The notes beneath the pieces are model-generated. The model had not been told where the DNA came from, did no database searches, and saw only the letters and a program-made list of their open reading frames with translations. Of a stretch of DNA of 31,001 nt, positions 1-31,001 are shown piece by piece (positions within the stretch are counted from its first letter, which is position 1; the number at the start of each line of letters is the position of its first letter). The DNA comes from Utricularia gibba (Eukaryota; Plantae; Magnoliophyta). The position numbers and the translations under genes are program-made. The stretch covers positions 1 through 31,001 of the forward strand of contig NEEC01000301.1 in assembly GCA_002189035.1 (NCBI GenBank). The letters run 5' to 3'.

Positions 1-1162
1 TCAGCTTAGGCTTGGGCCGAAAGTAAGTTGAAGCCCGGCAAAAAAGTGATGTATTTATTAACGTTCGGTTTTCGGGGTTGCCTACATGGTTTTTTCAAGG
101 AACAGCTTCTCGTTTTGTGGTGGCCAGTCTCACTAGGAACTTGGTCCGGGCCGCTGATTCTTTATGGCTCATGAGGACAAAAGGATGCAAATCGATGAAT
201 ACAATGATGCATTTGTTTAAATTACGATATCACGTGCACCCCACATCATTTTTTCAACAACGTACTTTATACTTGAAGAGGCGGTCTTGGGTGCACCTAG
301 AACGGGACAAAGGTCAGGTTGGGCTTTGCCAGAGAGTTAGTTGTAGCCCGGCAATGAAAGTGATGTATTTATTAACGTTTGGTTTTCGGGGTTGCCTACA
401 TGGTTTTCAAGGAAAAGCTTCTCGTTTTGTGGCGGCTGCTCTCGCTGGGAACTTGGTCCGGGCCCCCGATTCTATATGGCTCATGAGGTCAACCAGATGC
501 AAATCGATGAATATAATGATGCATTTGTTTTAAATTACGATATCACGTGCACCCTACATCATTTTTTCAACAACTTACTTTATACTTGAGCAGGTGGTCT
601 TGGGGGGCAAGAGGAACAGGACAAAGGTCAGCATAGGCTTTGGCCGAAAGTAAGTTGTAGCCCGGCAAAGAAAGTGATGTATGTATTAACGTTCGGTTTT
701 CGGGTTGCTTACATGGTTTTTCAAGGAACAGCTTCTCCTTTAGTGGCGGCCAGTCTCGCTAGGAACTTGGTCCGGGCCCCTGACTCTTTATGGCTCATGA
801 GGAGAAAAGGATGCAAATCCATGAATACAATGATGCATTTGTTTAAATTACGATATCACGTGCACCCTACATCATTTTTTCAACAACTACTTTATACTTG
901 AGGAGGTGGTCTTGGGGGGCAAGAGGAACCGGACAAAGGTCAGCTTAGGCTTGGGCCGAAAGTAAGTTGTAGCCCGGCAAAGAAAGTGATGTATTTATTA
1001 ACGTTCGGTTTTCGGAAGCTGCCTAAATGCTTTTTGAAAGAACATCTTCTCGTTTTATGGCGGCCAGTCTCGCTGGGAACTTGGTCCTTGACCCTGGTTC
1101 TGTATGGCTCATGGGGTGATGAAAAAAAATGATGCATTTGTTTAAATTACGGTATCACGTGC
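1..1162. repeat. Tandem satellite, ~314-bp monomer, block 1 (about 3.7 monomers)
   Basis: The landmark AAAGTGATGTAT recurs at 46, 360, 674 and 986 (steps of 314, 314, 312 bp). The satellite stops at ...ATCACGTGC (1162). Confidence 0.98.
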
Positions 1163-1898
1163 CCTGGTTATATTCATATTGTGCATTTTGGTGAGGAGAG
1201 CAGATTCACCATAAGTTTTCTCAACTTCATTACCATCTCTTAGTTCCAATCTCTTTTCTGTAGATTGCAACTCAATCATGAACTCTCTAAATGTTGGCTC
1301 TGGTGTAACAGGATATTCAGGATACAGCTGATGGAGCTTTCCTTTCAATAATGTCAAGGATTTTTCTTTCTGTCTCAAGTGCACATAACTTTGGCTCGAA
1401 TCTTGCAGGTAGGCTCATGATTGCCTTGCTAATCACCTTTTGATCCTCAAGTTTTTCCCCCAATCCTCGAATCTCCTTCACAAGCTTCGCAGTACGTTCA
1501 TAATAGACTTGTATGGTTTCATTGTCTAACATTTTGTTCCTCTCAAAGTCCTCCAGCTTGTTTTTGCATAATATCTCTCTGAGTTTGGCATCGCCTTCAT
1601 AATGGGATTTGAGAGTATCCCATATTTCTTTTGCTGATTGACACTCTGCAATATCATCAAATAGATGTTCAGAGATGGCTTGATACAAGGCATCCATTGC
1701 TTCATCTTTTCTCTGTTGAAGATACTCAGCTTCCTCTTGCTGTTCTGATGTGGATTTGCTTGTTATTGTAATAGCCGGAATCTCCCTTTCAACAACATCC
1801 CAAATCTTTCTGACCCGAAGGTAGCTGCGCATCTTTTTGACCCAGCTTCCATACTCTGAACCATCAAATATTGGAGGTCCTCTACCAGATGCCATCAT
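1142..1898 (-). pseudogene. gag: Copia gag fragment, copy 1, frameshifted by +1
   Basis: Split into ORF-track frames 1317..1904 and 1142..1384. CCTTTCAAT at 1341-1349 has one more T than CCTTCAAT in copies 2 and 3. This may be a consensus error. Confidence 0.8.
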
Positions 1899-2004
1899 AG
1901 CCACCGCTTGACAAGCTTTGGGTTGATACTTGGTAATCTACCAAGTAAAAAACGCTGAACGGTATATAAAATACTGAAACGAACACAGGTTTGAGAACCT
2001 TACT

Positions 2005-2016
2005 GCTCTGATACCA
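2005..2016 (-). other. Primer-binding site for tRNA-iMet, copy 1
   Basis: Plus-strand GCTCTGATACCA is minus-strand TGGTATCAGAGC, directly adjacent to the CA end of the LTR. This is the canonical plant copia iMet PBS. Confidence 0.95.
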
Positions 2017-2336
2017 TGTTGTTGCAAGAAAAATAGAGTCTTGGGAAGTAACAAAAGGTATGCTTATGAGATCACCTTGGATGAAAAACGACTCATGAAC
2101 AATAAGAATGACCGAAAACCTAATTGACACGCATTTCTAGTAGGGCTATATATACCAAATACCTAGGTTACCCAACAGGGCCACAATCATTGAAAACACA
2201 CAAAAAGCCCAACAACTCGAATCCAACACTTCCATGCTCGAACCCAACACCTTTTTTTATCTGAAATATGACATTATGACACAAGTTTAGTTCTTCCAAT
2301 CACCTTCAAGCTTTGGATTGAGGCTGATCTCCAACA
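2017..2336 (-). repeat. LTR, copy 1 (320 bp)
   Basis: TGTTG...CAACA terminal inverted repeats, bounded by the PBS and by satellite. It is 5 bases shorter than copies 2 and 3 through small deletions. Confidence 0.9.
2147..2154 (-). promoter_or_regulatory. Putative LTR TATA box, copy 1
   Basis: Minus strand GGTATATATAGCCC in the middle of the LTR, in the usual position upstream of R/U5. Confidence 0.55.
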
Positions 2337-5216
2337 CTTGGTCCGGGCCCCTGATTCTTTATGGCTCATGAGGACAAAAGGATGCAAATCGATGAATACA
2401 ATGATGCAATTGTTTAAATTACGATATCACGTGCACCCTACATGATTTTTTCAACAACTTACTTTATACTTGAGGAGGTGGTCTTGGGGGCAAGAGGAAC
2501 CGGACAAAGGTCAGCTTATGCTTGGGTCGAAAGTAAGTTGTAGCCTGACAAAGAAAGTGATCTATTTATTAACGTTCGGTTTTCGGGGCTACCTACATGG
2601 TTTTTCAAGGAACGCTTCTCGTTTTGTGGCGGCCAGTCTCGCTGGAACTTGGTCTTTACCCCGATTCTGTATGGCTCATGAGGTCAACCGAATGCAAATC
2701 GATTAAAAAAAATGATGCATTTGTTTAAATTGCGATATGACGTGCACCCCACATGATTTTTTCAACAACTTACTTTATACTTGAGGAGGCGGTCTTGGGG
2801 TACAGCTGGAACGGGACAAAGGTAAGGTTTGGCTTGCGCCGAGAGTTAGTTGTAGCCCGACAAATAAAGTGATAATTTGATATCGTTCGGTTTTCGGGGC
2901 TACCTACATGGTTTTTCAAGGAACGCTTCTCGTTTTGTGGCGGCCAGTCTCGCTGGGAACTTGGTCCTTGACCCCGATTCTGTATGGCTCATGAGGTCAA
3001 CCGATGCAAATCGATTAAAAAAGTGATGCATTTGTTTAAATTGCGATATCACGTGCACCCCACATGATTTTTTCAACAACTTACTTTATACTTGAGGAGG
3101 CGATCTTGGGTGCACCTGAACGGACAAAGGTAAGGTTTGGCTTGCGCCGAGAGTTAGTTGTAGCCCGACAAATAAAGTGATGTATTTATTATCGTTCGGT
3201 TTTCGGGGGCTGCCTACATGGTTTTTCAAGGAACCGCTTCTCGTTTTGTGGCGGCCAGTCTCGCTGGGAACTTGGTCCTTGACCCCGATTCTGTATGGCT
3301 CATGAGGTCAACCGGATGCAAATCGAAAAAAAAATGATGCATTTGTTTAAATTACGATATCACGTGCACCCCACATGATTTTTTCGACAACTTACTTTAT
3401 ACATGGGAGGCGGTCTTGGGGGGTACCTGGAACGGAAAAGGTCAGCTTAGGCTTGGGCCGATAGTAAGTTGTAGCCCGGCAAAGAAAGTGATGTATTTAT
3501 TATCGTTCGGTTTTTGGGGGCTGCCTACATGGTTTTTCAAGGAACATCTTCTCTTTTTGTGGCGGCCGCTCTCGCTGGGAACTTGGTCCGGGCCCTGATT
3601 CTCTTTGGCTCATGAGGACAAAAGGATGCAAATCGATGAATACAATGATGCATTTGTTTAATTACGATATCACGTGCACCCCACATGATTTTTTCAACAA
3701 CTTACTTTATACTTGAGGAGGTGGTCTTGGGGGCAAGAGGAACCAGACAACGGTCATATTAGGCTTGGGCCGAAAGTAAGTTGTAGCCCGGCAAAAAGTG
3801 ATGTATTTATTAACGTTCGGTTTTCAGGGTTCCCTACATGGTTTTCCAAGGAAAAGCTTTTCGTTTTGTGGCGGCCGCTCTCGCTGGGACTTGGTCCGGG
3901 CCCCTAATTCTTTATGGCTCATGAGGACAAAAGGATGCAAATCGATGAAATAATGATGCATTTGTTTAAATTACGATGTCGCGTGCACCCCAAATGATTT
4001 TTTAACAACATACTTTATACATGAGGAGGCGGTCTTGGGGGGCACTTGGAACCGGAAAAAGATCAGCTTAGGCTTGGGCCGAAAGTAAGTTGTAGCCCGG
4101 CAAAGAAAGTGATGTATTTATTAACGTTCGGTTTTCGGGGTTGCCTACATGGTTTTCAAGGAACAGCTTCTCGTTTTGTGGTGGCCAGTCTCACTAGGAA
4201 CTTGGTCCGGGCCGCTGATTCTTTATGGCTCATGAGGACAAAAGGATGCAAATCGATGAATACAATGATGCATTTGTTTAAATTACGATATCACGTGCAC
4301 CCACATCATTTTTTCAACAACGTACTTTATACTTGAAGAGGCGGTCTTGGGGTGCACCTAGAACGGGACAAAGGTCAGGTTGGGCTTTGCCAGAGAGTTA
4401 GTTGTAGCCCGCAATGAAAGTGATGTATTTATTAACGTTTGGTTTTCGGGGTTGCCTACATGGTTTTTCAAGGAAAAGCTTCTCGTTTTGTGGCGGCTGC
4501 TCTCGCTGGGAACTTGGTCCGGGCCCCGATTCTATATGGCTCATGAGGTCAACCAGATGCAAATCGATGAATATAATGATGCATTTGTTTAAATTACGAT
4601 ATCACGTGCACCCTACATCATTTTTTCAACAACTTACTTTATACTTGAGCAGGTGGTCTTGGGGGCAAGAACAGGACAAGGTCAGCATAGGCTTTGGCCG
4701 AAAGTAAGTTGTAGCCCGGCAAAGAAAGTGATGTATGTATTAACGTTCGGTTTTCGGGGTTGCTTACATGGTTTTTCAAGGAACAGCTTCTCCTTTAGTG
4801 GCGGCCAGTCTCGCTAGGAACTTGGTCCGGGCCCCTGACTCTTTATGGCTCATGAGGAGAAAAGGATGCAAATCCATGAATACAATGATGCATTTGTTTA
4901 AATTACGATATCACGTGCACCCTACATCATTTTTTCAACAACGTACTTTATACTTGAGGAGGTGGTCTTGGGGGCAAGAGGAACCGGACAAAGGTCAGCT
5001 TAGGCTTGGGCCGAAAGTAAGTTGTAGCCCGGCAAAGAAAGTGATGTATTTATTAACGTTCGGTTTTCGGAAGCTGCCTAAATGCTTTTTGAAAGAACAT
5101 CTTCTCGTTTTATGGCGGCCAGTCTCGCTGGGAACTTGGTCCTTGACCCTGGTTCTGTATGGCTCATGGGTGATGAAAAAAAATGATGCATTTGTTTAAA
5201 TTACGGTATCACGTGC
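2337..5216. repeat. Tandem satellite, block 2 (about 9.3 monomers)
   Basis: AAAGTGAT landmarks at 2557, 2869, 3177, 3488, 3798, 4109, 4420, 4728 and 5041. Confidence 0.98.
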
Positions 5217-5951
5217 CCTGGTTATATTCATATTGTGCATTTTGGTGAGGAGAGCAGATTCACCATAAGTTTTCTCAACTTCATTACCATCTCTTAGTTC
5301 CAATCTCTTTTCTGTAGATTGCAACTCAATCATGAACTCTCTAAATGTTGGCTCTGGTGTAACAGGATATTCAGGATACAGCTGATGGAGCTTTCCTTCA
5401 ATAATGTCAAGGATTTTTCTTTCTGTCTCAAGTGCACATAACTTTGGCTCGAATCTTGCAGGTAGGCTCATGATTGCCTTGCTAATCACCTTTTGATCCT
5501 CAAGTTTTTCCCCCAATCCTCGAATCTCCTTCACAAGCTTCGCAGTACGTTCATAATAGACTTGTATGGTTTCATTGTCTAACATTTTGTTCCTCTCAAA
5601 GTCCTCCAGCTTGTTTTTGCATAATATCTCTCTGAGTTTGGCATCGCCTTCATAATGGGATTTGAGAGTATCCCATATTTCTTTTGCTGATTGACACTCT
5701 GCAATATCATCAAATAGATGTTCAGAGATGGCTTGATACAAGGCATCCATTGCTTCATCTTTTCTCTGTTGAAGATACTCAGCTTCCTCTTGCTGTTCTG
5801 ATGTGGATTTGCTTGTTATTGTAATAGCCGGAATCTCCCTTTCAACAACATCCCAAATCTTTCTGACCCGAAGGTAGCTGCGCATCTTTTTGACCCAGCT
5901 TCCATACTCTGAACCATCAAATATTGGAGGTCCTCTACCAGATGCCATCAT
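5196..5951 (-). CDS. gag: C-terminally truncated copia Gag, 251 aa from the first ATG, capsid-type region only
   Basis: N-terminal PPIFDGSEYGSWVKKMRSYL...IWDVVE resembles the DUF4219 motif. DEAMDALYQAISE...SAKEIWDTLKSHYEG and MLDNETIQVYYER...KVISKAIMSLPARF resemble the Retrotran_gag_2/UBN2 region of copia Gag. There is no CX2CX4HX4C knuckle. The ORF track starts 2 codons earlier at a GTG. The last residues (ARDTVI) and the TAA come from satellite sequence. Confidence 0.88.
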   Translation of the reverse strand: MMASGRGPPIFDGSEYGSWVKKMRSYLRVRKIWDVVEREIPAITITSKSTSEQQEEAEYLQQRKDEAMDALYQAISEHLFDDIAECQSAKEIWDTLKSHYEGDAKLREILCKNKLEDFERNKMLDNETIQVYYERTAKLVKEIRGLGEKLEDQKVISKAIMSLPARFEPKLCALETERKILDIIEGKLHQLYPEYPVTPEPTFREFMIELQSTEKRLELRDGNEVEKTYGESALLTKMHNMNITRARDTVI

Positions 5952-6057
5952 AGCCACCGCTTGACAAGCTTTGGGTTGATACTTGGTAATCTACCAAGTA
6001 AAAAACGCTGAACGGTATATAAAATACTGAAACGAACACAGGTTTGAGAACCTTACT

Positions 6058-6069
6058 GCTCTGATACCA
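6058..6069 (-). other. Primer-binding site for tRNA-iMet, copy 2
   Basis: Minus-strand TGGTATCAGAGC immediately after the LTR end. Confidence 0.95.
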
Positions 6070-6394
6070 TGTTGTTGCAAGAAAAATAGAGTCTTGGGAA
6101 GTAACAAAAAGGTAATGCTTATGAGATCACCTTGGATGAAAAACGACTCATGAACAATAAGAATGACCGAAAACCTAATTGACACGCATTTCTAGTAGGG
6201 CTTATATATACCAAATACCTAGGTTACCCAACAGTGGGCCACAATCATTGAAAACACACAAAAAGCCCAACAACTCGAATCCAACACTTCCATGCTCGAA
6301 CCCAACACCTTTTTTTATCTGAAATATGACATTATGACACAAGTTTAGTTCTTCCAATCACCTTCAAGCTTTGGATTGAGGCTGATCTCCAACA
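6070..6394 (-). repeat. LTR, copy 2 (325 bp)
   Basis: TGTTGGAGATC...CTTGCAACAACA with TGTTG/CAACA inverted termini. Confidence 0.92.
6202..6210 (-). promoter_or_regulatory. Putative LTR TATA box, copy 2
   Basis: Minus strand GGTATATATAAGCCC, oriented towards the PBS and gag. Confidence 0.6.
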
Positions 6395-9300
6395 CTTGGT
6401 CCGGGCCCCTGATTCTTTATGGCTCATGAGGACAAAAGGATGCAAATCGATGAATACAATGATGCAATTGTTTAAATTACGATATCACGTGCACCCTACA
6501 TGATTTTTTCAACAACTTACTTTATACTTGAGGAGGTGGTCTTGGGGGGCAAGAGGAACCGGACAAAGGTCAGCTTATGCTTGGGTCGAAAGTAAGTTGT
6601 AGCCTGACAAAGAAAGTGATCTATTTATTAACGTTCGGTTTTCGGGGCTACCTACATGGTTTTTCAAGGAACCGCTTCTCGTTTTGTGGCGGCCAGTCTC
6701 GCTGGGAACTTGGTCCTTTACCCCGATTCTGTATGGCTCATGAGGTCAACCGAATGCAAATCGATTAAAAAAAATGATGCATTTGTTTAAATTGCGATAT
6801 GACGTGCACCCCACATGATTTTTTCAACAACTTACTTTATACTTGAGGAGGCGGTCTTGGGTGCACCTGGAACGGGACAAAGGTAAGGTTTGGCTTGCGC
6901 CGAGAGTTAGTTGTAGCCCGACAAATAAAGTGATAAATTTGATATCGTTCGGTTTTCAGGGGCTACCTACATGGTTTTTCAAGGAACCGCTTCTCGTTTT
7001 GTGGCGGCCAGTCTCGCTGGGAACTTGGTCCTTGACCCCGATTCTGTATGGCTCATGAGGTCAACCGGATGCAAATCGATTAAAAAAATGATGCATTTGT
7101 TTAAATTGCGATATGACGTGCACCCCACATGATTTTTTCAACAACTTACTTTATACTTGAGGAGGCGGTCTTGGGTGCACCTGGAACGGGACAAAGGTAA
7201 GGTTTGGCTTGGCCGAGAGTTAGTTGTAGCCCGACAAATAAAGTGATGTATTTATTATCGTTCGGTTTTCGGGGGCTGCCTACATGGTTTTTCAAGGAAC
7301 CGCTTCTCGTTTTGTGGCGGCCAGTCTCGCTGGGAACTTGGTCCTTGACCCCGATTCTGTATGGCTCATGGGGTCAACCGGATGCAAATCGAAGAAAAAA
7401 AATGATGCATTTGTTTAAATTACGATATCACGTGCACCCACATGATTTTTTCAACAACTTACTTTATACATGGGGAGGCGGTCTTGGGGGTACCTGGAAC
7501 GGAAAATGGTCAGCTTGGCTTGGCCGATAGTAAGTTGTAGCCCGGCAAAAAAGTGATGTATTTATTATCGTTCGGTTTTCGGGGGCTGCCTACATGGTTT
7601 TTCAAGGAACATCTTCTCTTTTTGTGGCGGCCAGTCTCGCTGGGAACTTGGTCCGGCCCCGATTCTTTGGCTCATGAGGTCAAAAGGATGCAAATCGATG
7701 AAAAAATGATGCATTTGTTTAATTACGATATCACGTGCACCCCACATGATTTTTTCAACAACTTACTTTATACTTGAGGAGGCGGTCTTGGGGCAAGAGG
7801 AACCAGACAAGGTCATTTAGGCTTGGGCCGAAAGTAAGTTGTAGCCCGGCAAAGAAAGTGATGTATTTATTAACGTTCGGTTTTCGGGTTCCTACATGGT
7901 TTTCAAGGAAAAGCTTTTCGTTTTGTGGCGGCCGCTCTCGCTGGGAACTTGGTCCGGGCCCCGATTCTTTATGGCTCATGAGGTCAAAAGGATGCAAATC
8001 GATGAAAAAATGATGCATTTGTTTAAATTACGATGTCGCGTGCACCCCAAATGATTTTTTTAACAACTTACTTTATACTTGAGGAGGCGGTCTTGGGGGG
8101 CACTTGGAACCGGAAAAAGTCAGCTTAGGCTTGGGCCGAAAGTAAGTTGTAGCCCGGCAAAGAAAGTGATGTATTTATTACGTTCGGTTTTCGGGGTTGC
8201 CTACATGGTTTTTCAAGGAACAGCTTCTCGTTTTGTGGGCCAGTCTCGCTGGAACTTGGTCCGGGCCCTGATTCTTTATGGCTCATGAGGACAAAAGGAT
8301 GCAAATCGATGAAAAAATGATGCATTTGTTTAAATTACGATATCACGTGCACCCCACATGATTTTTTCAACAACTTACTTTATACTTGAGAGGCGGTCTT
8401 GGGGTGCACCTAGAACGGGACAAAGGTCAGGTTGGGCTTGCCGAGAGTTAGTTGTAGCCCGGCAAAGAAAGTGATGTATTTATTATCGTTCGGTTTTCGG
8501 GGTTGCCTACATGGTTTTTCAAGGAAAGCTTCTCGTTTTGTGGCGGCTGCTCTCGCTGGGAACTTGGTCCGGGCCCCGATTCTTATGGCTCATGAGGTCA
8601 ACCAGATGCAAATCGATGAATAAAATGATGCATTTGTTTAAATTACGATATCACGTGCACCCTACATCATTTTTTCAACAACTTACTTTATACTTGAGCA
8701 GGTGGTCTTGGGGGCAAGAGGAACAGGACAAAGGTCAGCATAGGCTTGGCCGAAAGTAAGTTGTAGCCCGGCAAAGAAAGTGATGTATTTATTAACGTTC
8801 GGTTTTCGGGGTTGCTACATGGTTTTTCAAGGAACAGCTTCTCTTTGTGGCGGCCAGTCTCGCTGGAACTTGGTCCGGGCCCCTGATTCTTTATGGCTCA
8901 TGAGGAGAAAAGGATGCAAATCTGAATACAATGATGCATTTGTTTAAATTACGATATCACGTGCACCCTACATGATTTTTTCAACAACTACTTTATACTT
9001 GAGGAGGGTCTTGGGGGGCAAGGAACCGGAAAAGGTCAGCTTAGGCTTGGGCCGAAAGTAAGTTGTAGCCCGGCAAAGAAAGTGATGTATTTATTAACGT
9101 TCGGTTTTCGGGGTTGCCTACATGGTTTTTCAAGGAACAGCTTCTCGTTTTGTGGTGGCCAGTCTCACTAGGAACTTGGTCCGGGCCCTGATTCTTTATG
9201 GCTCATGAGGACAAAAGGATGCAAATCGATGAATACAATGATGCATTTGTTTAAATTACGATATCACGTGCACCCCACATCATTTTTTCAACAATACTTT

Positions 9301-10184
9301 ATACTTGAAGAGGCGGTCTTGGGGTGCACCTAGAACGGGACAAAGGTCAGGTTGGCTTTGCCGAGAGTTAGTTGTAGCCCGGCAATGAAAGTGATGTATT
9401 TATTAACGTTTGGTTTTCGGGTTGCCTACATGGTTTTTCAAGGAAAAGCTTCTCGTTTTGTGGCGGCTGCTCTCGCTGGGAACTTGGTCCGGGCCCCCGA
9501 TTCTATATGGCTCATGAGGTCAACCAGATGCAAATCGATGAATATAATGCATTTGTTTAAATTACGATATCACGTGCACCCTACATCATTTTTTCAACAA
9601 TACTTTATACTTGAGCAGGTGGTCTTGGGGGCAAGAGGAACAGGACAAAGGTCAGCATAGGCTTTGGCCGAAAGTAAGTTGTAGCCCGGCAAAGAAAGTG
9701 ATGTATGTATTAACGTTCGGTTTTCGGGTTGCTTACATGGTTTTTCAAGGAACAGCTTCTCCTTTAGTGGCGGCCAGTCTCGCTAGGAACTTGGTCCGGG
9801 CCCCTGACTCTTTATGGCTCATGAGGAGAAAAGGATGCAAATCCATGAATACAATGATGCATTTGTTTAAATTACGATATCACGTGCACCCTACATCATT
9901 TTTTCAACAACTACTTTATACTTGAGGAGGGGTCTTGGGGGGCAAGAGGAACCGGAAAAGGTCAGCTTAGGCTTGGGCCGAAAGTAAGTTGTAGCCCGGC
10001 AAAGAAAGTGATGTATTTATTAACGTTCGGTTTTCGGAAGCTGCCTAAATGCTTTTTGAAAGAACATCTTCTCGTTTTATGGCGGCCAGTCTCGCTGGGA
10101 ACTTGGTCCTTGACCCTGGTTCTGTATGGCTCATGGGGTGATGAAAAAAAATGATGCATTTGTTTAAATTACGGTATCACGTGC
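6395..10184. repeat. Tandem satellite, block 3 (about 12.3 monomers)
   Basis: Landmarks at 6616, 6930, 7243, 7553, 7858, 8166, 8471, 8780, 9082, 9391, 9698 and 10008. Confidence 0.98.
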
Positions 10185-10919
10185 CCTGGTTATATTCATA
10201 TTGTGCATTTTGGTGAGGAGAGCAGATTCACCATAAGTTTTCTCAACTTCATTACCATCTCTTAGTTCCAATCTCTTTTCTGTAGATTGCAACTCAATCA
10301 TGAACTCTCTAAATGTTGGCTCTGGTGTAACAGGATATTCAGGATACAGCTGATGGAGCTTTCCTTCAATAATGTCAAGGATTTTTCTTTCTGTCTCAAG
10401 TGCACATAACTTTGGCTCGAATCTTGCAGGTAGGCTCATGATTGCCTTGCTAATCACCTTTTGATCCTCAAGTTTTTCCCCCAATCCTCGAATCTCCTTC
10501 ACAAGCTTCGCAGTACGTTCATAATAGACTTGTATGGTTTCATTGTCTAACATTTTGTTCCTCTCAAAGTCCTCCAGCTTGTTTTTGCATAATATCTCTC
10601 TGAGTTTGGCATCGCCTTCATAATGGGATTTGAGAGTATCCCATATTTCTTTTGCTGATTGACACTCTGCAATATCATCAAATAGATGTTCAGAGATGGC
10701 TTGATACAAGGCATCCATTGCTTCATCTTTTCTCTGTTGAAGATACTCAGCTTCCTCTTGCTGTTCTGATGTGGATTTGCTTGTTATTGTAATAGCCGGA
10801 ATCTCCCTTTCAACAACATCCCAAATCTTTCTGACCCGAAGGTAGCTGCGCATCTTTTTGACCCAGCTTCCATACTCTGAACCATCAAATATTGGAGGTC
10901 CTCTACCAGATGCCATCAT
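10164..10919 (-). CDS. gag: C-terminally truncated copia Gag, 251 aa, copy 3
   Basis: The ORF-track translation (10164..10925) is identical to that of copy 2. Confidence 0.88.
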   Translation of the reverse strand: MMASGRGPPIFDGSEYGSWVKKMRSYLRVRKIWDVVEREIPAITITSKSTSEQQEEAEYLQQRKDEAMDALYQAISEHLFDDIAECQSAKEIWDTLKSHYEGDAKLREILCKNKLEDFERNKMLDNETIQVYYERTAKLVKEIRGLGEKLEDQKVISKAIMSLPARFEPKLCALETERKILDIIEGKLHQLYPEYPVTPEPTFREFMIELQSTEKRLELRDGNEVEKTYGESALLTKMHNMNITRARDTVI

Positions 10920-11025
10920 AGCCACCGCTTGACAAGCTTTGGGTTGATACTTGGTAATCTACCAAGTAAAAAACGCTGAACGGTATATAAAATACTGAAA
11001 CGAACACAGGTTTGAGAACCTTACT

Positions 11026-11037
11026 GCTCTGATACCA
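11026..11037 (-). other. Primer-binding site for tRNA-iMet, copy 3
   Basis: Minus-strand TGGTATCAGAGC immediately after the LTR end. Confidence 0.95.
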
Positions 11038-11362
11038 TGTTGTTGCAAGAAAAATAGAGTCTTGGGAAGTAACAAAAAGGTAATGCTTATGAGATCACCT
11101 TGGATGAAAAACGACTCATGAACAATAAGAATGACCGAAAACCTAATTGACACGCATTTCTAGTAGGGCTTATATATACCAAATACCTAGGTTACCCAAC
11201 AGTGGGCCACAATCATTGAAAACACACAAAAAGCCCAACAACTCGAATCCAACACTTCCATGCTCGAACCCAACACCTTTTTTTATCTGAAATATGACAT
11301 TATGACACAAGTTTAGTTCTTCCAATCACCTTCAAGCTTTGGATTGAGGCTGATCTCCAACA
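11038..11362 (-). repeat. LTR, copy 3 (325 bp)
   Basis: TG...CA termini; matches the copy 2 LTR. Confidence 0.92.
11170..11178 (-). promoter_or_regulatory. Putative LTR TATA box, copy 3
   Basis: Minus strand GGTATATATAAGCCC. Confidence 0.6.
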
Positions 11363-14300
11363 CTTGGTCCGGGCCCCTGATTCTTTATGGCTCATGAGGA
11401 CAAAAGGATGCAAATCGATGAATACAATGATGCAATTGTTTAAATTACGATATCACGTGCACCCTACATGATTTTTTCAACAACTTACTTTATACTTGAG
11501 GAGGTGGTCTTGGGGGGCAAGAGGAACCGGACAAAGGTCAGCTTATGCTTGGGTCGAAAGTAAGTTGTAGCCTGACAAAGAAAGTGATCTATTTATTAAC
11601 GTTCGGTTTTCGGGGCTACCTACATGGTTTTTCAAGGAACCGCTTCTCGTTTTGTGGCGGCCAGTCTCGCTGGGAACTTGGTCCTTTACCCCGATTCTGT
11701 ATGGCTCATGAGGTCAACCGAATGCAAATCGATTAAAAAAAATGATGCATTTGTTTAAATTGCGATATGACGTGCACCCCACATGATTTTTTCAACAACT
11801 TACTTTATACTTGGGGAGGCGGTCTTGGGGTGCACCTGGAACGGGACAAAGGTAAGGTTTGGCTAGCGCCGAGAGTTAGTTGTAGCCCGACAAATAAAGT
11901 GATAAATTTGATATCGTTCGGTTTTCAGGGGCTACCTACATGGTTTTTCAAGGAACCGCTTCTCGTTTTGTGGCGGCCAGTCTCGCTGGGAACTTGGTCT
12001 TTGACCCCGATTCTGTATGGCTCATGAGGTCAACCGGATGCAAATCGATTAAAAAAAATGATGCATTTGTTTAAATTGCGGTATGACGTGCACCCCACAT
12101 GATTTTTTTCAACAACTTACTTTATACTTCAGGAGGCGGTCTTGGGGTGCACCTGGAACGGGACAAAGGTCAGCTTAGGCTTGGCAGAAAGTAAGTTGTA
12201 GCCCGCCAAAGAAAGTGATGTATTTATTATCGTTTGGTTTTCGGGGTTGCCTACATGGTTTTTCAAGGAACATCTTCTCGTTTTGTGGCTCGCTGGGGAC
12301 TTTTCCTGGACCCCGATTCTGTATGGCTCATGGGGTCAAAAGGATGCAAATCGATGAATAAAATGATGCATTTGTTTAATTACGATATCACGTGCACCCC
12401 ACATGATTTTTTCGACAACTTACTTTATACATGGGAGGCGGTCTTGGGGGTACCTGGAACCGGAAAATGGTCAGCTTAGGCTTGGGCCGATAGTAAGTTG
12501 TAGCCCGGCAAAGAAAGTGATGTATTTATTATCGTTCGGTTTTCGGGGGTTCCTACATGGTTTTTCAAGGAACATCTTCTCGTTTTGTGGCAGCCAGTCT
12601 CGCTGGGAGCTTTGTCCTGACCCCGATTCTGTATGGCTCATGGGGTCAAAAGGATGCAAATCGATGAATACAATGATGCATTTGTTTCAATTACGATATC
12701 ACGTGCACCCCACATGATTTTTTCGACAACTTACTTTATACATGGGAGGCGGTCTTGGGGGTACCTGGAACCGGAAAATGGTCAGCTTAGGCTTGGGCCG
12801 ATAGTAAGTTGTAGCCCGGCAAGAAAGTGATGTATTTATTAACGTTCGGTTTTCGGGGTTGCCTACATGGTTTTTCAAGGAACATCTTCCCGTTTTGTGG
12901 TGGCTAGTCTCGCTGGGAACTTTGTCCTGGACCTCGATTCTTTATGTCTTATGAGGTCAACCGGATGCAAATCGATGAAAAAAATTGATGCATTTGTTTA
13001 AATTACGATATCACGTGCACCCTACATGATTTTTTCAACAACTTACTTTATACTTGAGGAGGTGGTCTTGGGGGGCAAGAGGAACCAGACAACGGTCATA
13101 TTAGGCTTGGGCCGAAAGTAAGTTGTAGCCCGGCAAAGAAAGTGTTGTATTTATTAACGTTCGGTTTTCAGGGTTGCCTACATGGTTTTCCAAGGAAAAG
13201 CTTTTCGTTTTGTGGCGGCCGCTCTCGCAGGGCACTTGGTCCGGGCCCCTGATTCTTTATGGCTCATGAGGACAAAAGGATGCAAATCGATGAAAATAAT
13301 GATGCATTTGTTTAAATTACGATGTCGCGTGCACCCCAAATGATTTTTTAACAACATACTTTATACATGAGGAGGCGGTCTTGGGGGGCACTTGGAACCG
13401 GAAAAAGATCAGCTTAGGCTTGGGCGAAAGTAAGTTGTAGCCCGGCAAAGAAAGTGATGTATTTATTATCGTTCGGTTTACGGGGGCTTCCTACATGGTT
13501 TTTCAAGGAACATCTTCTCGTTTTATGGCGGCCAGTCTCGCTGGGAACTTGGTCCTTGACCCTGGTTCTGTATGGCTAATGGGGTCAACCGGATGCAAAT
13601 CGATGAAAAAAAATGATGCATTTGTTTAAATTGCGATATCACATGCACCCCACATGATTTTTTCAACAACTTACTTTATACTTGAGGAGGCGATCTTAGG
13701 GTGCACCTCGAACAGGACAAAGGTAAGGTTTGGCTTGCGCCAAGAGTTAGTTGTAGCCCGACAAAGAAAGTGATGTATTTATTATCGTTCGGTTTTTGGG
13801 GTTGCCTACATGGTTTTTCAAGGAACATCTTCTCGTTTTGTGGCAGCCAGTCTCGCTGGGAGCTTTGTCCTGGACCCCGATTCTGTATGGCTCATGGGGT
13901 CAAAAGGATGCAAATCGATGAATACAATGATGCATTTGTTTCAATTACGATATCACGTGCACCCCACATGATTTTTTCGACAACTTACTTTATACATGGG
14001 GAGGCGGTCTTGGGGGGTACCTGGAACCGGAAAATGGTCAGCTTAGGCTTGGGCCGATAGTAAGTTGTAGCCCGGCAAAGAAAGTGATGTATTTATTATC
14101 GTTCGGTTTCGGGGTTCCTACATGGTTTTTCAAGGAACATCTTCTCGTTTTGTGGCAGCCAGTCTCGCTGGGACTTTGTCCTGGACCCCGATTCTGTATG
14201 GCTCATGGGGTCAAATCATTGATGCATTTGTTTAAATTACGATATCACGTGCACCCTACATGATTTTTTCAACAACTTACTTTATATTTGAGGAGGTGGT

Positions 14301-17300
14301 CTTGGGGGGCAAGAGGAACCAGACAACGGTCATATTAGGCTTGGGCCGAAAGTAAGTTGTAGCCCGGCAAAGAAAGTGATGTATTTATTAACGTTCGGTT
14401 TTCAGGGTTGCCTACATGGTTTTCCAAGGAAAAGCTTTTCGTTTTGTGGCGGCTGCTCTCGCTGGGCACTTGGTCCGGGCCCCTGATTCTTTATGGCTCA
14501 TGAGGACAAAAGGATGCAAATCGATGAAAATAATGATGCATTTGTTTAAATTACGATGTCGCGTGCACCCCAAATGATTTTTTAACAACATACTTTATAC
14601 ATGAGGAGGCGGTCTTGGGGGGCACTTGGAACCGGAAAAAGATCAGCTTAGGCTTGGGCGAAAGTAAGTTGTAGCCCGGCAAAGAAAGTGATGTATTTAT
14701 TATCGTTCGGTTTTTGGGGTTGCCTACATGGTTTTTCAAGGAACATCTTCTCGTTTTGTGGTGGCAGTCTCGCTGGGAACTTGGTCCTTGACCCGATTCT
14801 GTATGGCTCATGGGGTCAACCGGATGCAAATCGATGAAAAAAATGATGCATTTGTTTAAATTACGATATCACGTGCACCCACATGATTTTTTCACAACTT
14901 ACTTTATACTGGGGAGGCGGTCTTGGGGGTACCTGGAACCGGAAAAGGTCAGCTTAGGCTTGGGCCGATAGTAAGTTGTAGCCCGGCAAAGAAAGTGATG
15001 TATTTATTAACGTTCGGTTTTCGGGGTTGCCTACATGGTTTTTCAAGGAACATCTTCTCGTTTTGTGGTGGCAGTCTCGCTGGGAGCTTTGTCCTGGACC
15101 CCGATTCTGTATGGCTCATGGGGTCAAAAGGATGCAAATCGATGAATACAATGATGCATTTGTTTCAATTACGATATCACGTGCACCCCACATGATTTTT
15201 TCGACAACTTACTTTATACATGGGGAGGCGGTCTTGGGGGTACCTGGAACCGGAAAATGGTCAGCTTAGGCTTGGGCCGATAGTAAGTTGTAGCCCGGCA
15301 AGAAAGTGATGTATTTATTAACGTTCGGTTTCGGGGTTGCCTACATGGTTTTTCAAGGAACATCTTCCCGTTTTGTGGTGGCTAGTCTCGCTGGGAACTT
15401 TGTCCTGGACCTCGATTCTTTATGTCTTATGAGGTCAACCGGATGCAAATCGATGAAAAAAATTGATGCATTTGTTTAAATTACGATATCACGTGCACCC
15501 TACATGATTTTTTCAACAACTTACTTTATACTTGAGGAGGTGGTCTTGGGGGCAAGAGGAACCAGACAACGGTCATATTAGGCTTGGGCCGAAAGTAAGT
15601 TGTAGCCCGGCAAAGAAAGTGATGTATTTATTAACGTTCGGTTTTCAGGGTTGCCTACATGGTTTTCCAAGGAAAAGCTTTTCGTTTTGTGGCGGCCGCT
15701 CTCGCAGGGCACTTGGTCCGGGCCCCTGATTCTTTATGGCTCATGAGGACAAAAGGATGCAAATCGATGAAAATAATGATGCATTTGTTTAAATTACGAT
15801 GTCGCGTGCACCCCAAATGATTTTTTTAACAACATACTTTATACATGAGGAGGCGGTCTTGGGGGCACTTGGAACCGGAAAAAGATCAGCTTAGGCTTGG
15901 GCCGAAAGTAAGTTGTAGCCCGGCAAAGAAAGTGATGTATTTATTATCGTTCGGTTTACGGGGGCTTCCTACATGGTTTTTCAAGGAACATCTTCTCGTT
16001 TTATGGCGGCCAGTCTCGCTGGGAACTTGGTCCTTGACCCTGGTTCTGTATGGCTAATGGGGTCAACCGGATGCAAATCGATGAAAAAAAAATGCATTTG
16101 TTTAAATTGCGATATCACATGCACCCCACATGATTTTTTCAACAACTTACTTTATACTTGAGGAGGCGATCTTAGGGTGCACCTCGAACAGGACAAAGGT
16201 AAGGTTTGGCTTGCGCCAAGAGTTAGTTGTAGCCCGACAAAGAAAGTGATGTATTTATTATCGTTCGTTTTGGGGTTGCCTACATGGTTTTTCAAGGAAC
16301 ATCTTCTCGTTTTGTGGCAGCCAGTCTCGCTGGGAGCTTTGTCCTGGACCCCGATTCTGTATGGCTCATGGGGTCAAAAGGATGCAAATCGATGAATACA
16401 ATGATGCATTTGTTTCAATTACGATATCACGTGCACCCCACATGATTTTTTCGACAACTTACTTTATACATGGGGAGGCGGTCTTGGGGGGTACCTGGAA
16501 CCGGAAAATGGTCAGCTTAGGCTTGGGCCGATAGTAAGTTGTAGCCCGGCAAAGAAAGTGATGTATTTATTATCGTTCGGTTTACGGGGGCTTCCTACAT
16601 GGTTTTTCAAGGAACATCTTCTCGTTTTGTGGCAGCCAGTCTCGCTGGGAGCTTTGTCCTGGACCCCGATTCTGTATGGCTCATGGGGTCAAAAGGATGC
16701 AAATCGATGAATACAATGATGCATTTGTTTCAATTACGATATCACGTGCACCCCACATGATTTTTTCGACAACTTACTTTATACATGGGGAGGCGGTCTT
16801 GGGGGTACCTGGAACCGGAAAATGGTCAGCTTAGGCTTGGGCCGATAGTAAGTTGTAGCCCGGCAAGAAAGTGATGTATTATTAACGTTCGGTTTTCGGG
16901 GTTGCCTACATGGTTTTTCAAGGAACATCTTCCGTTTTGTGGTGGCTAGTCTCGCTGGGAACTTTGTCCTGGACCTCGATTCTTTATGTCTTATGAGGTC
17001 AACCGGATGCAAATCGATGAAAAAAATTGATGCATTTGTTTAAATTACGATATCACGTGCACCCTACATGATTTTTTCAACAACTTACTTTATACTTGAG
17101 GAGGTGGTCTTGGGGGGCAAGAGGAACCAGACAACGGTCATATTAGGCTTGGCCGAAAGTAAGTTGTAGCCCGGCAAAGAAAGTGATGTATTTATTAACG
17201 TTCGGTTTTCAGGGTTGCCTACATGGTTTTCCAAGGAAAAGCTTTTCGTTTTGTGGCGGCCGCTCTCGCAGGGCACTTGGTCCGGGCCCCTGATTCTTTA

Positions 17301-20300
17301 TGGCTCATGAGGACAAAAGGATGCAAATCGATGAAAATAATGATGCATTTGTTTAAATTACGATGTCGCGTGCACCCCAAATGATTTTTTTAACAACATA
17401 CTTTATACATGAGGAGGCGGTCTTGGGGGCACTTGGAACCGGAAAAAGATCAGCTTAGGCTTGGGCGAAAGTAAGTTGTAGCCCGGCAAAGAAAGTGATG
17501 TATTTATTATCGTTCGGTTTACGGGGGCTTCCTACATGGTTTTTCAAGGAACATCTTCTCGTTTTATGGCGGCCAGTCTCGCTGGGAACTTGGTCCTTGA
17601 CCCTGGTTCTGTATGGCTAATGGGGTCAACCGGATGCAAATCGATGAAAAAAAATGATGCATTTGTTTAAATTGCGATATCACATGCACCCCACATGATT
17701 TTTTCAACAACTTACTTTATACTTGAGGAGGCGATCTTAGGGTGCACCTCGAACAGGACAAAGGTAAGGTTTGGCTTGCGCCAAGAGTTAGTTGTAGCCC
17801 GACAAAGAAAGTGATGTATTTATTATCGTTCGGTTTTTGGGGTTGCCTACATGGTTTTTCAAGGAACATCTTCTCGTTTTGTGGCAGCCAGTCTCGCTGG
17901 GAGCTTTGTCCTGGACCCCGATTCTGTATGGCTCATGGGGTCAAAAGGATGCAAATCGATGAATACAATGATGCATTTGTTTCAATTACGATATCACGTG
18001 CACCCACATGATTTTTTCGACAACTTACTTTATACATGGGGAGGCGGTCTTGGGGGTACCTGGAACCGGAAAATGGTCAGCTTAGGCTTGGGCCGATAGT
18101 AAGTTGTAGCCCGGCAAAGAAAGTGATGTATTTATTATCGTTCGGTTTACGGGGGCTTCCTACATGGTTTTTCAAGGAACATCTTCTCGTTTTGTGGCAG
18201 CCAGTCTCGCTGGGAGCTTTGTCCTGGACCCCGATTCTGTATGGCTCATGGGTCAAATACATTCCGATGCATTTGTTTAAATTACGATATCACGTGCACC
18301 CTACATGATTTTTTCAACAACTTACTTTTATTTGAGGAGGTGGTCTTGGGGGCAAGAGGAACCAGACAACGGTCATATTAGGCTTGGGCCGAAAGTAAGT
18401 TGTAGCCCGGCAAAGAAAGTGATGTATTTATTAACGTTCGGTTTTCAGGGTTGCCTACATGGTTTTCCAAGGAAAAGCTTTTCGTTTTGTGGCGGGTGCT
18501 CTCGCTGGGCACTTGGTCCGGGCCCCTGATTCTTTATGGCTCATGAGGACAAAAGATGCAAATCGATGAAAATAATGATGCATTTGTTTAAATTACGATG
18601 TCGCGTGCACCCCAAATGATTTTTAACAACATACTTTATACATGAGGAGCGGTCTTGGGGGGCACTTGGAACCGGAAAAAGATCAGCTTAGGCTTGGGAC
18701 GAAAGTAAGTTGTAGCCCGGCAAAGAAAGTGATGTATTTATTATCGTTCGGTTTACGGGGGCTTCCTACATGGTTTTTCAAGGAACATCTTCTCGTTTTA
18801 TGGCGGCCAGTCTCGCTGGGAACTTGGTCCTTGACCCTGGTTCTGTATGGCTAATGGGGTCAACCGGATGCAAATCGATGAAAAAAAAATGATGCATTTG
18901 TTTAAATTGCGATATCACATGCACCCCACATGATTTTTTCAACAACTTACTTTATACTTGAGGAGGCGATCTTAGGGTGCACCTCGAACAGGACAAAGGT
19001 AAGGTTTGGCTTGCGCCGAGAGTTAGTTGTAGCCCGACAAAGAAAGTGATGTATTTATTATCGTTCGGTTTTTGGGGTTGCCTACATGGTTTTTCAAGGA
19101 ACATCTTCTCGTTTTGTGGCAGCCAGTCTCGCTGGGAGCTTTGTCCTGGACCCCGATTCTGTATGGCTCATGGGGTCAAAAGGATGCAAATCGATGAATA
19201 CAATGATGCATTTGTTTCAATTACGATATCACGTGCACCCCACATGATTTTTTCGACAACTTACTTTATACATGGGGAGGCGGTCTTGGGGGTACCTGGA
19301 ACCGGAAAATGGTCAGCTTAGGCTTGGGCCGATAGTAAGTTGTAGCCCGGCAAAGAAAGTGATGTATTTATTATCGTTCGGTTTACGGGGGCTTCCTACA
19401 TGGTTTTTCAAGGAACATCTTCTCGTTTTGTGGCAGCCAGTCTCGCTGGGAGCTTTGTCCTGGACCCCGATTCTGTATGGCTCATGGGGTCAAATACATT
19501 GATGCATTTGTTTAAATTACGATATCACGTGCACCCTACATGATTTTTTCAACAAACTTACTTTATACTTGAGGAGGTGGTCTTGGGGGCAAGAGGAACC
19601 AGACAACGGTCATATTAGGCTTGGGCCGAAAGTAAGTTGTAGCCCGGCAAAGAAAGTGATGTATTTATTAACGTTCGGTTTTCAGGGTTGCCTACATGGT
19701 TTTCCAAGGAAAAGCTTTTCGTTTTGTGGCGGCGCTCTCGCTGGGCACTTGGTCCGGGCCCCTGATTCTTTATGGCTCATGAGGACAAAAGATGCAAATC
19801 GATGAAAATAATGATGCATTTGTTTTAAATTACGATGTCGCGTGCACCCAAATGATTTTTTTTAACAACATACTTTATACATGAGGAGGCGGTCTTGGGG
19901 GGCACTTGGAACCGGAAAAAGATCAGCTTAGGCTTGGGACGAAAGTAAGTTGTAGCCCGGCAAAGAAAGTGATGTATTTATTATCGTTCGGTTTACGGGG
20001 GCTTCCTACATGGTTTTTCAAGGAACATCTTCTCGTTTTGGCGGCCAGTCTCGCTGGGAACTTGGTCCTTGACCCGATTCTGTATGGCTAATGGGGTCAA
20101 CCGGATGCAAATCGATGAAAAAAAAATGATGCATTTGTTTAAATTACGATATCACGTGCACCCCACATGATTTTTTCAACAACTTACTTTATACTTGAGG
20201 AGGCGTCTTGGGTACCTGAACAGGACAAAGGTAGGTTTGGCTTGGCCGAAGTAAGTTGTAGCCCGACAAAGAAAGTGATGTATTTATTATCGTTCGGTTT

Positions 20301-29300: not shown

Positions 29301-31001
29301 TCTGTATGGCTAATGGGGTCAACCGGATGCAAATCGATGAAAAAAAATGATGCATTTGTTTAAATTGCGATATCACATGCACCCCACATGATTTTTTCAA
29401 CAACTTACTTTATACTTGAGGAGGCGATCTTAGGGTGCACCTCGAACAGGACAAAGGTAAGGTTTGGCTTGGCCAAGAGTTAGTTGTAGCCCGACAAAGA
29501 AAGTGATGTATTTATTATCGTTCGGTTTTTGGGGTTGCCTACATGGTTTTTCAAGGAACATCTTCTCGTTTTGTGGCAGCCAGTCTCGCTGGGAACTTGT
29601 CCTGGACCCCGATTCTGTATGGCTCATGGGGTCAAAAGGATGCAAATCGATGAATACAATGATGCATTTGTTTCAATTACGATATCACGTGCACCCCACA
29701 TGATTTTTTCGACAACTTACTTTATACATGGGGAGGCGGTCTTGGGGGGTACCTGGAACCGGAAAATGGTCAGCTTAGGCTTGGGCCGATAGTAAGTTGT
29801 AGCCCGGCAAAGAAAGTGATGTATTTATTATCGTTCGGTTTACGGGGCTTCCTACATGGTTTTTCAAGGAACATCTTCTCGTTTTGTGGCAGCAGTCTCG
29901 CTGGGAGCTTTGTCCTGGACCCCGATTCTGTATGGCTCATGGGTCAAATACATGATGCATTTGTTTAAATTACGATATCACGTGCACCCTACATGATTTT
30001 TTTCAACAACTTACTTTATACTTGAGGAGGTGGTCTTGGGGGGCAAGAGGAACCAGACAACGGTCATATAGGCTTGGGCCGAAAGTAAGTTGTAGCCCGG
30101 CAAAGAAAGTGATGTATTTATTAACGTTCGGTTTTTAGGGTTGCCTACATGGTTTTCCAAGGAAAAGCTTTTCGTTTTGTGGCGGCTGCTCTCGCTGGGC
30201 ACTTGGTCCGGGCCCCTGATTCTTTATGGCTCATGAGGACAAAATGCAAATCGATGAAAATAATGATGCATTTGTTTAAATTACGATGTCGCGTGCACCC
30301 CAAATGATTTTTTAACAACATACTTTATACATGAGGAGGCGGTCTTGGGGGGCACTTGGAACCGGAAAAAGATCAGCTTAGGCTTGGGACGAAGTAAGTT
30401 GTAGCCCGGCAAAGAAAGTGATGTATTTATTATCGTTCGGTTTACGGGGGCTTCCTACATGGTTTTTCAAGGAACATCTTCTCGTTTTGGCGGCCAGTCT
30501 CGCTGGGAACTTGGTCCTTGACCCTGGTTCTGTATGGCTAATGGGGTCAACCGGATGCAAATCGATGAAAAAAAATGATGCATTTGTTTAAATTGCGATA
30601 TCACATGCACCCCACATTTTTCAACAACTTACTTTACTTGAGGAGGCGATCTTAGGGGCACCTCGAACAGGACAAAGGTGGTTTGGCTTGCGCCAAGAGT
30701 TAGTTGTAGCCCGACAAAGAAAGTGATGTATTTATTATCGTTCGGTTTTGGGGTTGCCTACATGGTTTTCAAGGAACATCTTCTCGTTTTGTGGCAGCCA
30801 GTCTCGCTGGGAGCTTGTCCTGGACCCCGATTCTGTATGGCTCATGGGGTCAAAAGGATGCAAATCGATGAATACAATGATGCATTTGTTTCAATTACGA
30901 TATCACGTGCACCCACATGATTTTTTTCGACAACTTACTTTATACATGGGGAGGCGGTCTTGGGGGTACCTGGAACCGGAAAATGGTCAGCTTAGGCTTG
31001 G
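11363..31001. repeat. Tandem satellite, block 4 (about 63 monomers, no element insertions)
   Basis: 63 AAAGTGAT-type landmarks counted from 11584 to 30723, with steps of 287-317 bp. The shortest steps belong to monomers carrying an ~18-bp deletion. Confidence 0.98.
12800..31001. repeat. Four-monomer higher-order repeat, ~1.22-1.24 kb
   Basis: The monomer preceded by AACCAGACAACGGTCATATT has its landmark at 13142, 14376, 15619, 17183, 18419, 19656, 20897, 22123, 23360, 25531, 26753, 27975, 28880 and 30109. Ten of the 13 intervals are 1222-1243 bp (4 monomers); the others contain 5, 7 and 3 monomers. Confidence 0.9.

Follow-up and report, generated by a model that had tools for sequence, protein, structure and literature searches.

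The repeat units of the retrotransposon-derived tandem repeats CRM1TR and CRM4TR (maize), the St repeats (potato) and Sobo consist wholly or mainly of element sequence. Tandem units that join satellite to transposon are represented by the composite repeats of the human T2T assembly and by the CentO + CRR segmental duplication of the rice centromere, their amplification being by segmental duplication. As for monomer length, satellites of 312 to 324 bp exist in Humulus. In the CEN180 arrays of Arabidopsis, ATHILA elements were duplicated after their integration, together with the satellite, and five such pairwise duplications are described, involving full-length Gypsy elements or solo LTRs that lie 8.9 to 538 kb apart (Naish et al., bioRxiv 10.1101/2021.05.30.446350). 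Identical target-site duplications (TSDs) accompany the transposon copies reported inside satellite arrays of Anoplius nigerrimus (a Gypsy element, 5 copies), Porphyrio hochstetteri (a LINE, 11 copies), and Cervus elaphus (retroviruses, 6 copies) (10.64898/2026.09.17.752431). For Utricularia gibba, the species studied here, the putative centromeric regions have been reported to lack satellite repeats (PMC8333044). We analyzed a 31,001-nucleotide stretch of its contig NEEC01000301.1 (hereafter, the window), in which a fragment of a copia element recurs as a subunit of a satellite array.

RESULTS

Our analysis revealed three copies of a retroelement cassette, all of them on the minus strand: cassette 1 (1166-2336; 1,171 bp), with its LTR at 2017-2336, its primer-binding site (PBS) at 2005-2016, and gag running from an ATG near 1898 down to 1166; cassette 2 (5220-6394; 1,175 bp), with the LTR at 6070-6394, the PBS at 6058-6069, and an open ORF at 5196-5957; and cassette 3 (10188-11362; 1,175 bp), with the LTR at 11038-11362, the PBS at 11026-11037, and an ORF at 10164-10925. 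Each copy thus comprises an LTR of 320-325 bp followed by a PBS of the tRNA-iMet type and by codons 1-246 of gag. A BLAST search with positions 1001-2500 as the query returned three copies within the window at 99.5-100% identity. A 20-mer spanning the left junction, named in a preliminary description of this DNA, occurs exactly three times (1156, 5210, and 10178), and alignment of the cassettes with their flanks upheld the claim of that description that both junctions are common to all three copies, base for base. Cassettes 2 and 3, said there to look identical, indeed agree at 1,175 of 1,175 bp, and cassette 1 differs from them by five small indels and no substitutions. One of these copies, cassette 1, carries an additional homopolymer base that breaks its ORF; this base was found in none of the read contigs among the matches listed, and is probably an assembly error.

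The gag fragment matched PF14223 (Retrotran_gag_2 / UBN2) over residues 25-185 (E = 2.3e-27; 96 bits versus a cut-off of 27) and, weakly and under the cut-off of that profile, PF13961 (23 bits); it is a copia-type gag, as carried by Ty1/copia LTR retrotransposons. The ORF of cassette 2 (5196-5957) encodes 253 aa, i.e., gag residues 1-246 followed by 7 satellite-encoded residues and a stop, and no exact-sequence record of the 253-aa or 251-aa gag/satellite ORFs was found in public assemblies. In all three copies the LTR has the termini TGTTG...CAACA and is immediately adjoined by TGGTATCAGAGC, which we take to be a PBS that would pair with the 3' terminus of initiator tRNA-Met. A TATA-like motif lies at 6198-6212 in the LTR of cassette 2. 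As read evidence we used Logan contigs from independent short-read runs, which give relative depths rather than an absolute copy number. Family relatives in run X7 part into a variety of flanking sequences at position 6394, the outer LTR end; the inner end (6070) is marked likewise. At the opposite side of the cassette, the gag frame of relatives in runs X5 and X7 stays open beyond 5220-5222, indicating that the left junction is a truncation. A second LTR, a pol ORF, and a polypurine tract (PPT) are absent from each cassette, all of which have one LTR and end at gag codon 246; the cassette is therefore a fragment of a Ty1/copia element and not a functional member of that group. A mobilizable pseudo-element was also considered and rejected, because ...AGGGGCCCGGACCAAG, which on the element strand precedes each LTR, is by eye not a polypurine tract. 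The stated absence of a TSD proved uninformative, as the element has lost its 3' end and one TSD side at most remains (CTTGG beside the LTR).

To place the junctions within the satellite monomer, we employed nhmmer segmentation, which confirmed that they fall at different monomer points (~position 100 on the left and position 1 on the right), with ~212 bp plus n monomers of satellite missing. On the right, the natural end of the 5' LTR of the element abuts monomer position 1. On the left, a break within gag is joined to monomer position ~100, with little or no clean microhomology; the sole resemblance of gag to satellite at the break is an imperfect TGCACC match.

The same segmentation resolved the satellite (plus strand) into an ordered series of monomer variants. 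The right part of an upstream unit (1-1165) consists of a partial F, then G, H, I, and a stub, J', of which G, H, I, and J' show no substitutions relative to unit 1; the presence of these monomers implies that the array continues to the left of the window. The satellite part of unit 1 (2337-5219) reads A B C D E F G H I + J', and that of unit 2 (6395-10187) reads A B C D E F G H [I/F] G H I + J', i.e., 12 full monomers. On its right side, the composite domain ends with the first two monomers, A and B, of another unit (11363-11992). The stub is 85-86 bp long and ends at monomer position ~100. The flanking variants therefore recur in the same order (A-I + J') beside every copy, as described previously. 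In contrast, the proposed unit of 9.3 monomers plus 1.18 kb holds as one form but not as the sole form: the window contains only two complete periods, and these are unequal (9 full monomers plus stub, 4,054 bp; 12 full monomers plus stub, 4,968 bp). Orthologous monomers are 95.5-100% identical, compared with ~87% for neighboring monomers, which is the identity pattern of a higher-order repeat (HOR). The cassette contributes 1,175 of 4,054 bp (29%) or 1,175 of 4,968 bp (24%) and the remainder is ordinary 312-bp satellite, so the unit is not essentially transposon sequence, as it is in a transposon-derived satellite. Around each cassette, G-H-I-J'-cassette-A is free of substitutions over ~2.7 kb, whereas monomers B-F carry 20 substitutions (~1.3% difference between units). 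The earlier view of the repeat as young accordingly fits the cassette with the sequence directly flanking it; the array, as the ~1.3% divergence in B-F shows, has some history.

The three extra monomers of unit 2 start with an I/F chimera (8869-9174, plus strand), in which, by alignment, the 5' ~170 nt resemble monomer I and the 3' ~140 nt resemble monomer F; in monomer clustering it groups with I/A-type monomers. This chimera is direct evidence of out-of-register homologous exchange in the array: unit 2 was lengthened by an unequal exchange with an offset of three monomers, and the chimera is its mark. Two monomers past cassette 3 the composite domain stops, adjoining an ordinary 4-monomer HOR: similarity to the composite unit falls from 99-100% to ~92% after monomer B, and no clean breakpoint was found in the monomer at the right end of the domain (11993-12298). 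The array that follows (11993-31001, plus strand) is devoid of cassettes and forms a loose 4-monomer HOR with a period of ~1,247 bp (identity 0.933 at lag 4 versus 0.87 at lags 1-3).

We assessed the read support for these structures. The left junction is bridged by a 139-bp contig (5177-5315; 0 differences, depth 326) from X1, an independent 2013 run; for the right junction, there was no bridging contig among the matches listed. Contigs exactly matching the cassette had depths of 386-534 in X1 and 84.5 in X5, as opposed to 7-28 for diverged family relatives, a depth suggesting that the composite unit is present in many genomic copies beyond the three in the window. Run X7, labeled as the same species, contains family relatives but hardly any of the satellite. 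Single-base indels are frequent in the assembly and half of them fall in homopolymers, rendering fine-scale differences unreliable, and polishing could have homogenized the cassettes. Nevertheless, the 20 substitutions in B-F and an indel of three monomers separate the units, which thus are distinct loci rather than copies made by the assembler. Neither the left-junction 20-mer nor the commonest satellite 23-mer had a match in JGI metagenome contigs, and six satellite-derived words (18-25 nt) had no match in published papers.

DISCUSSION

Our data argue strongly that the composite array arose from one copia insertion, followed by truncation and by recombinational co-amplification with the satellite through homologous exchange. 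A single Ty1/copia element, oriented on the minus strand, would have inserted precisely where two monomers of the ~312-bp satellite meet, and would then have lost all sequence past gag codon 246 as well as no less than 212 bp of satellite (we infer the loss from the breakpoint, which is observed), leaving a 1,175-bp LTR-PBS-gag stump incapable of transposition. Stump and ~9 flanking monomers would subsequently have been multiplied as a single 4.05-kb block via out-of-register homologous recombination between monomers (unequal sister-chromatid exchange or gene conversion), i.e., by the same process that builds satellite HORs. A later I x F exchange, three monomers out of register and shown by the chimera, gave rise to the 12-monomer (4.97-kb) variant. 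The preliminary description had proposed such a course, with amplification by a route other than transposition, and both parts are borne out: the shared junctions, the mid-gag break, the constant orientation, and the substitution-free ~2.7 kb fit this origin and exclude repeated transposition, and the I/F chimera shows homologous exchange. Junctions, strand, and flanking satellite variants are shared by all copies, as co-amplification entails.

Three other histories and one technical explanation deserve weighing. It is improbable that no deletion occurred and that the J'|gag joint is instead the breakpoint of the first tandem duplication (a non-homologous fusion of gag with a monomer lying downstream), with a full-length parent at the left end of the array. 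A joint with little or no clean microhomology beyond the imperfect TGCACC similarity would suit such an event, and the left end of the array falls outside the window; however, the rightmost unit should then run through I, J', and the rest of J, whereas homology stops after A-B, and the array-end phase sits at a monomer-to-monomer boundary. There is also little to recommend amplification through an extrachromosomal circle or rolling-circle replication with reinsertion, rather than by stepwise unequal exchange: the near-zero divergence of cassette and flanks across copies would be compatible with it, but nothing in the window requires a circle, and the two unit haplotypes, with a length variant explained by a homologous chimera, fit stepwise recombination.

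Somewhat less credible still is an assembly artefact, in which a noisy long-read assembler over-expanded or mis-joined a single cassette locus. The indel-rich consensus, the perfect identity of cassettes 2 and 3, and read evidence from contigs rather than from long reads spanning two cassettes could all be cited in its favor. Yet units 1 and 2 are set apart by the B-F substitutions and by an insertion of three monomers that includes a clean chimera, and words of the exact cassette and left junction reach depths of 326-534 in the 2013 run versus 7-28 for relatives; on the basis of these unit differences, the clean chimera, and the word depth, we set a pure artefact aside. Separate insertions of a short non-autonomous element, each at the same specific site, as suggested by an LTR end at the same monomer nucleotide every time, are hardly conceivable, given that the other end is a mid-gag break and not an element terminus, that second LTR, PPT, and TSD are all absent, and that the shared flanks, with monomer variants identical over kilobases, contradict them.

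Under single insertion, truncation, and co-amplification, the cassette could be a mere passenger, and we doubt the joint reading in which it is more than that, acting both through an LTR-driven putative gag-satellite RNA and as a register anchor. If that reading were true, head-to-tail copies would recreate LTR-PBS-gag-[9-12 satellite monomers]-LTR units. The intact-looking LTR, with its TATA-like motif, could drive a putative RNA for a zinc-knuckle-less Gag closed by the satellite stop codon, and this RNA could read on antisense into the satellite. Among the runs listed as containing the stretch, none is recorded as RNA, which is no evidence of silence. The unique 1.2-kb block may serve as a register anchor that focuses homogenization, which, if true, would explain the substitution-free zone centered on the cassette beside the 1.3% divergence in B-F.

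The locus offers a base-resolved example of a satellite array that captures a foreign fragment and turns it into a repeat subunit, with the recombination scar (the I/F chimera) and two unit haplotypes still visible. Within an otherwise featureless array, the cassette is a unique sequence tag, of use in tracking unequal exchange, dating array turnover, designing FISH or PCR markers, and checking the assembly of satellite regions.

Arabidopsis ATHILA and the 2026 centromere atlas already provide documented cases of retrotransposon co-amplification within satellite, and the present locus reveals no new mechanism. The likeness to the human T2T composite repeats and to rice CentO + CRR is one of description, as organisms and element classes differ. 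With CRM1TR/CRM4TR, the St repeats, and Sobo, our array shares a retroelement in the tandem unit, but here the element is a passenger. The same is true of the Athila-derived arrays of Rosa canina, in which retroelement sequence likewise lies within a tandemly repeated unit; there the unit is wholly or mainly element, whereas ~71-76% of ours is pre-existing satellite. The animal cases of the centromere atlas are similar in that a single integration was followed by copying through host recombination, with strand and flanks the same in every copy; those elements are mostly intact, whereas ours is a plant copia fragment for which the accompanying monomer order is resolved and the TSD is beyond check. 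As with ATHILA in CEN180, a retrotransposon inside a satellite array has been copied along with the satellite; unlike ATHILA, it is here a truncated copia stump, a fixed subunit that returns every 4-5 kb and is apparently repeated many times.

Results

Tandem Repeats Finder resolved one satellite with a period of 312-314 bp over positions 1-1113 and 2336-31001, and nhmmer, with one monomer as query, detected 92 monomers in the window together with three interruptions of ~1.17 kb each. These interruptions (i.e., cassettes 1, 2, and 3, at 1166-2336, 5220-6394, and 10188-11362) all read on the minus strand as copia fragments; BLAST with 1001-2500 returned three copies at 99.5-100% identity, and the junction 20-mer singled out in the preliminary description occurs exactly three times in the window (1156, 5210, and 10178). 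Pairwise comparison of all monomers gave their order, with variants lettered A to I and J' denoting the 85-86-bp stub left of each cassette. The window starts with ...F G H I J', followed by cassette 1; unit 1 (2337-5219) reads A B C D E F G H I J' and leads into cassette 2; unit 2 (6395-10187) reads A B C D E F G H [I/F] G H I J' and leads into cassette 3, after which A B and then unrelated monomers follow. The cassette-to-cassette periods are 4054 bp and 4968 bp. The composite domain ends on the right at ~11992, after monomer B, and its left end lies beyond the window. The three cassettes, common junctions, and recurring monomer order described previously were thus confirmed.

Each cassette carries an LTR with its outer end, starting TGTTGGAG, at 2336, 6394, or 11362 (minus strand) and an inner end of ...CAACA; it measures 320 bp in cassette 1 and 325 bp in cassettes 2 and 3. 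Directly after the LTR, without spacer, comes TGGTATCAGAGC, which we take to be the classical copia primer-binding site (PBS) for initiator tRNA-Met, and ~105 bp beyond the PBS begins an ORF that matches Pfam Retrotran_gag_2 ("gag-polypeptide of LTR copia-type"; E=2.3e-27). The gag part of the cassette ends after codon 246, the last 7 codons and the stop being satellite-encoded. In cassettes 2 and 3 this truncated ORF of 253 aa is open (5196-5957 and 10164-10925, minus strand), and that of cassette 1 is split by a homopolymer insertion of 1 bp (1317-1904 plus 1142-1384, minus strand); identical copies permit no inference about selection on gag. Zinc knuckle, pol, PPT, and second LTR are all absent from the cassette, which is incapable of autonomous transposition.

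The right junction coincides with the natural end of the LTR. Contigs of related elements in X7 (a sequencing run consulted, like X1 and X5, as Logan contigs) part into differing sequences precisely at 6394/6396, and likewise at 6070, the inner edge of the LTR. The satellite side of this junction is monomer position 1 (GGGAA|CTTGG); it is seen in the assembly only, none of the listed bridging contigs covering it. The left junction, at 5219|5220, marks a break rather than an element terminus, because relatives' contigs in X5 and X7 continue beyond 5220-5222 with the gag frame staying open. Its satellite side lies at monomer position ~100; junctions at positions 1 and ~100 leave ~212 bp plus n whole monomers of satellite missing, as had been claimed. 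At the break, gag and satellite share only an imperfect TGCACC similarity. The reported lack of a TSD is real but uninformative, since the element lacks its 3' end. Stub J' (1080-1165, 5135-5219, and 10102-10187) has ~15 bp fewer than other monomers before the junction (…CATGGGGTGATGAAAAAAAATG…), a private deletion common to all three copies.

No substitutions separate the three cassettes, nor do any occur between corresponding units in G, H, I, J', and A (a zone of ~2.7 kb per comparison), and B-F of units 1 and 2 differ by 20 substitutions in ~1550 bp, so that there are two or more unit haplotypes. The region surrounding the cassette was either homogenised more recently or coalesced later. 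There are also many 1-bp indels, half of them in homopolymers, which are probably long-read consensus errors. The five indels that set cassette 1 apart, including the gag frameshift, have no support among the read contigs shown, and X1 contigs over 5177-6062 show zero differences from cassette 2.

The three additional monomers of unit 2 open with a chimera (8869-9174), the first ~170 nt of which carry the diagnostic bases of I and the last ~140 nt those of F. Homologous exchange between I and F, misaligned by three monomers, is expected to yield just such a product, which is direct evidence that the cassette block is reshaped by the recombination process of the satellite itself. Within each unit, monomers B and C (2647-3270; 6709-7336) resemble one another (95-97%) more than they do other monomer types, which suggests an older local monomer duplication there.

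The cassette-free part, 12299-31001, forms a loose 4-monomer higher-order repeat (HOR) with a period of ~1247 bp, in which identity is 0.933 at lag 4 and 0.914 at lag 8, versus 0.87 at lags 1-3; irregularities of 3 and 5 monomers occur now and then in its monomer-type string. Unit monomers C-D-E-F match a single copy of the HOR that fills 12.3-31 kb (94-97% identity), and G, H, I, A, and B are without close counterpart there (best downstream identity ≤0.92). The border monomer between the two domains (11993-12298) is strongly diverged (≤0.93 to any other monomer) and has an 8-bp deletion close to its 3' end; it shows no clear chimeric breakpoint. Our literature search found no paper describing this satellite.

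Read evidence was restricted to Logan contigs, with depth given as word depth. A 139-bp contig from X1 (2013 run) bridges the left junction over 5177-5315 (43 nt of it in the satellite and 96 nt in the cassette) with no difference and a depth of 326, and exact cassette contigs reach 386-534 in X1 and 84.5 in X5 (2016 "plant metagenome" run). Over-expansion of the cassette locus by the assembler is argued against by these left-junction and cassette depths of 326-534 in X1, versus 7-28 for contigs of diverged relatives, and by the way the units differ in substitutions and in length; the depths also suggest a copy number well above three. Satellite bins in X1 mostly lie between a few times 10^4 and 2x10^5 (full range, ~2x10^3 to 2x10^5), and the cassette-to-monomer ratio is, very roughly, 1 per 200-400 monomers. 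In X7, which bears the same species label, LTR and gag relatives 90-95% similar and with varied flanks, seen along 4821-6708, represent a dispersed family, and satellite contigs are almost lacking; the satellite, and with it the composite unit, may therefore vary between accessions or between mislabelled taxa.

Discussion

The best-supported history is integration, truncation, and recombinational amplification. One copia element would have integrated at a monomer boundary, where its end is still visible, the common flanks pointing to a single event. The element beyond gag codon 246 and adjoining satellite would then have been lost, probably by a deletion ending at the observed breakpoint. Repeated out-of-register homologous exchange, as seen in the I/F event, would presumably also have produced the whole-unit duplications, multiplying the block and later altering its length.

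Rolling-circle amplification of the block is conceivable, if improbable, and is not needed. Another reading takes the J'|gag junction as the first duplication breakpoint, with a full-length parent element surviving at the array's left end; this fits poorly, as the right end of the array halts after A-B with no continuation through J. Retro-mobilisation of an LTR-satellite-LTR unit looks unlikely, because no RNA-labelled run on record contains the stretch and the bases that precede each LTR do not form a polypurine tract. The mid-gag junction and identical flanks rule out independent targeted insertions and support the preliminary interpretation, namely, a single insertion, truncation, and amplification by the satellite's mechanism. 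More novel, if improbable, readings are that the amplified cassette gives rise to an LTR-driven gag-satellite transcript, and that it acts as a register anchor for homogenisation.

The cassette is useful as a marker. CRM1TR and Sobo are transposon-derived satellites, a sense that we reject here, three quarters of the unit being old satellite. In Arabidopsis CEN180 arrays, five ATHILA loci were duplicated post-integration, and the HOR-generating mechanism was proposed (Naish et al., bioRxiv 10.1101/2021.05.30.446350). A 2026 centromere-atlas preprint (10.64898/2026.09.17.752431) describes insertions of Gypsy, LINE, and retroviral elements that were copied inside satellite arrays and have identical TSDs, as well as Athila-derived tandem arrays in Rosa. 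The present cassette is of the same kind as the ATHILA/CEN180 and atlas cases, and the process is already documented; it differs from them in being a truncated copia stump, in forming a fixed subunit with a short regular period, and in preserving the recombination scar.
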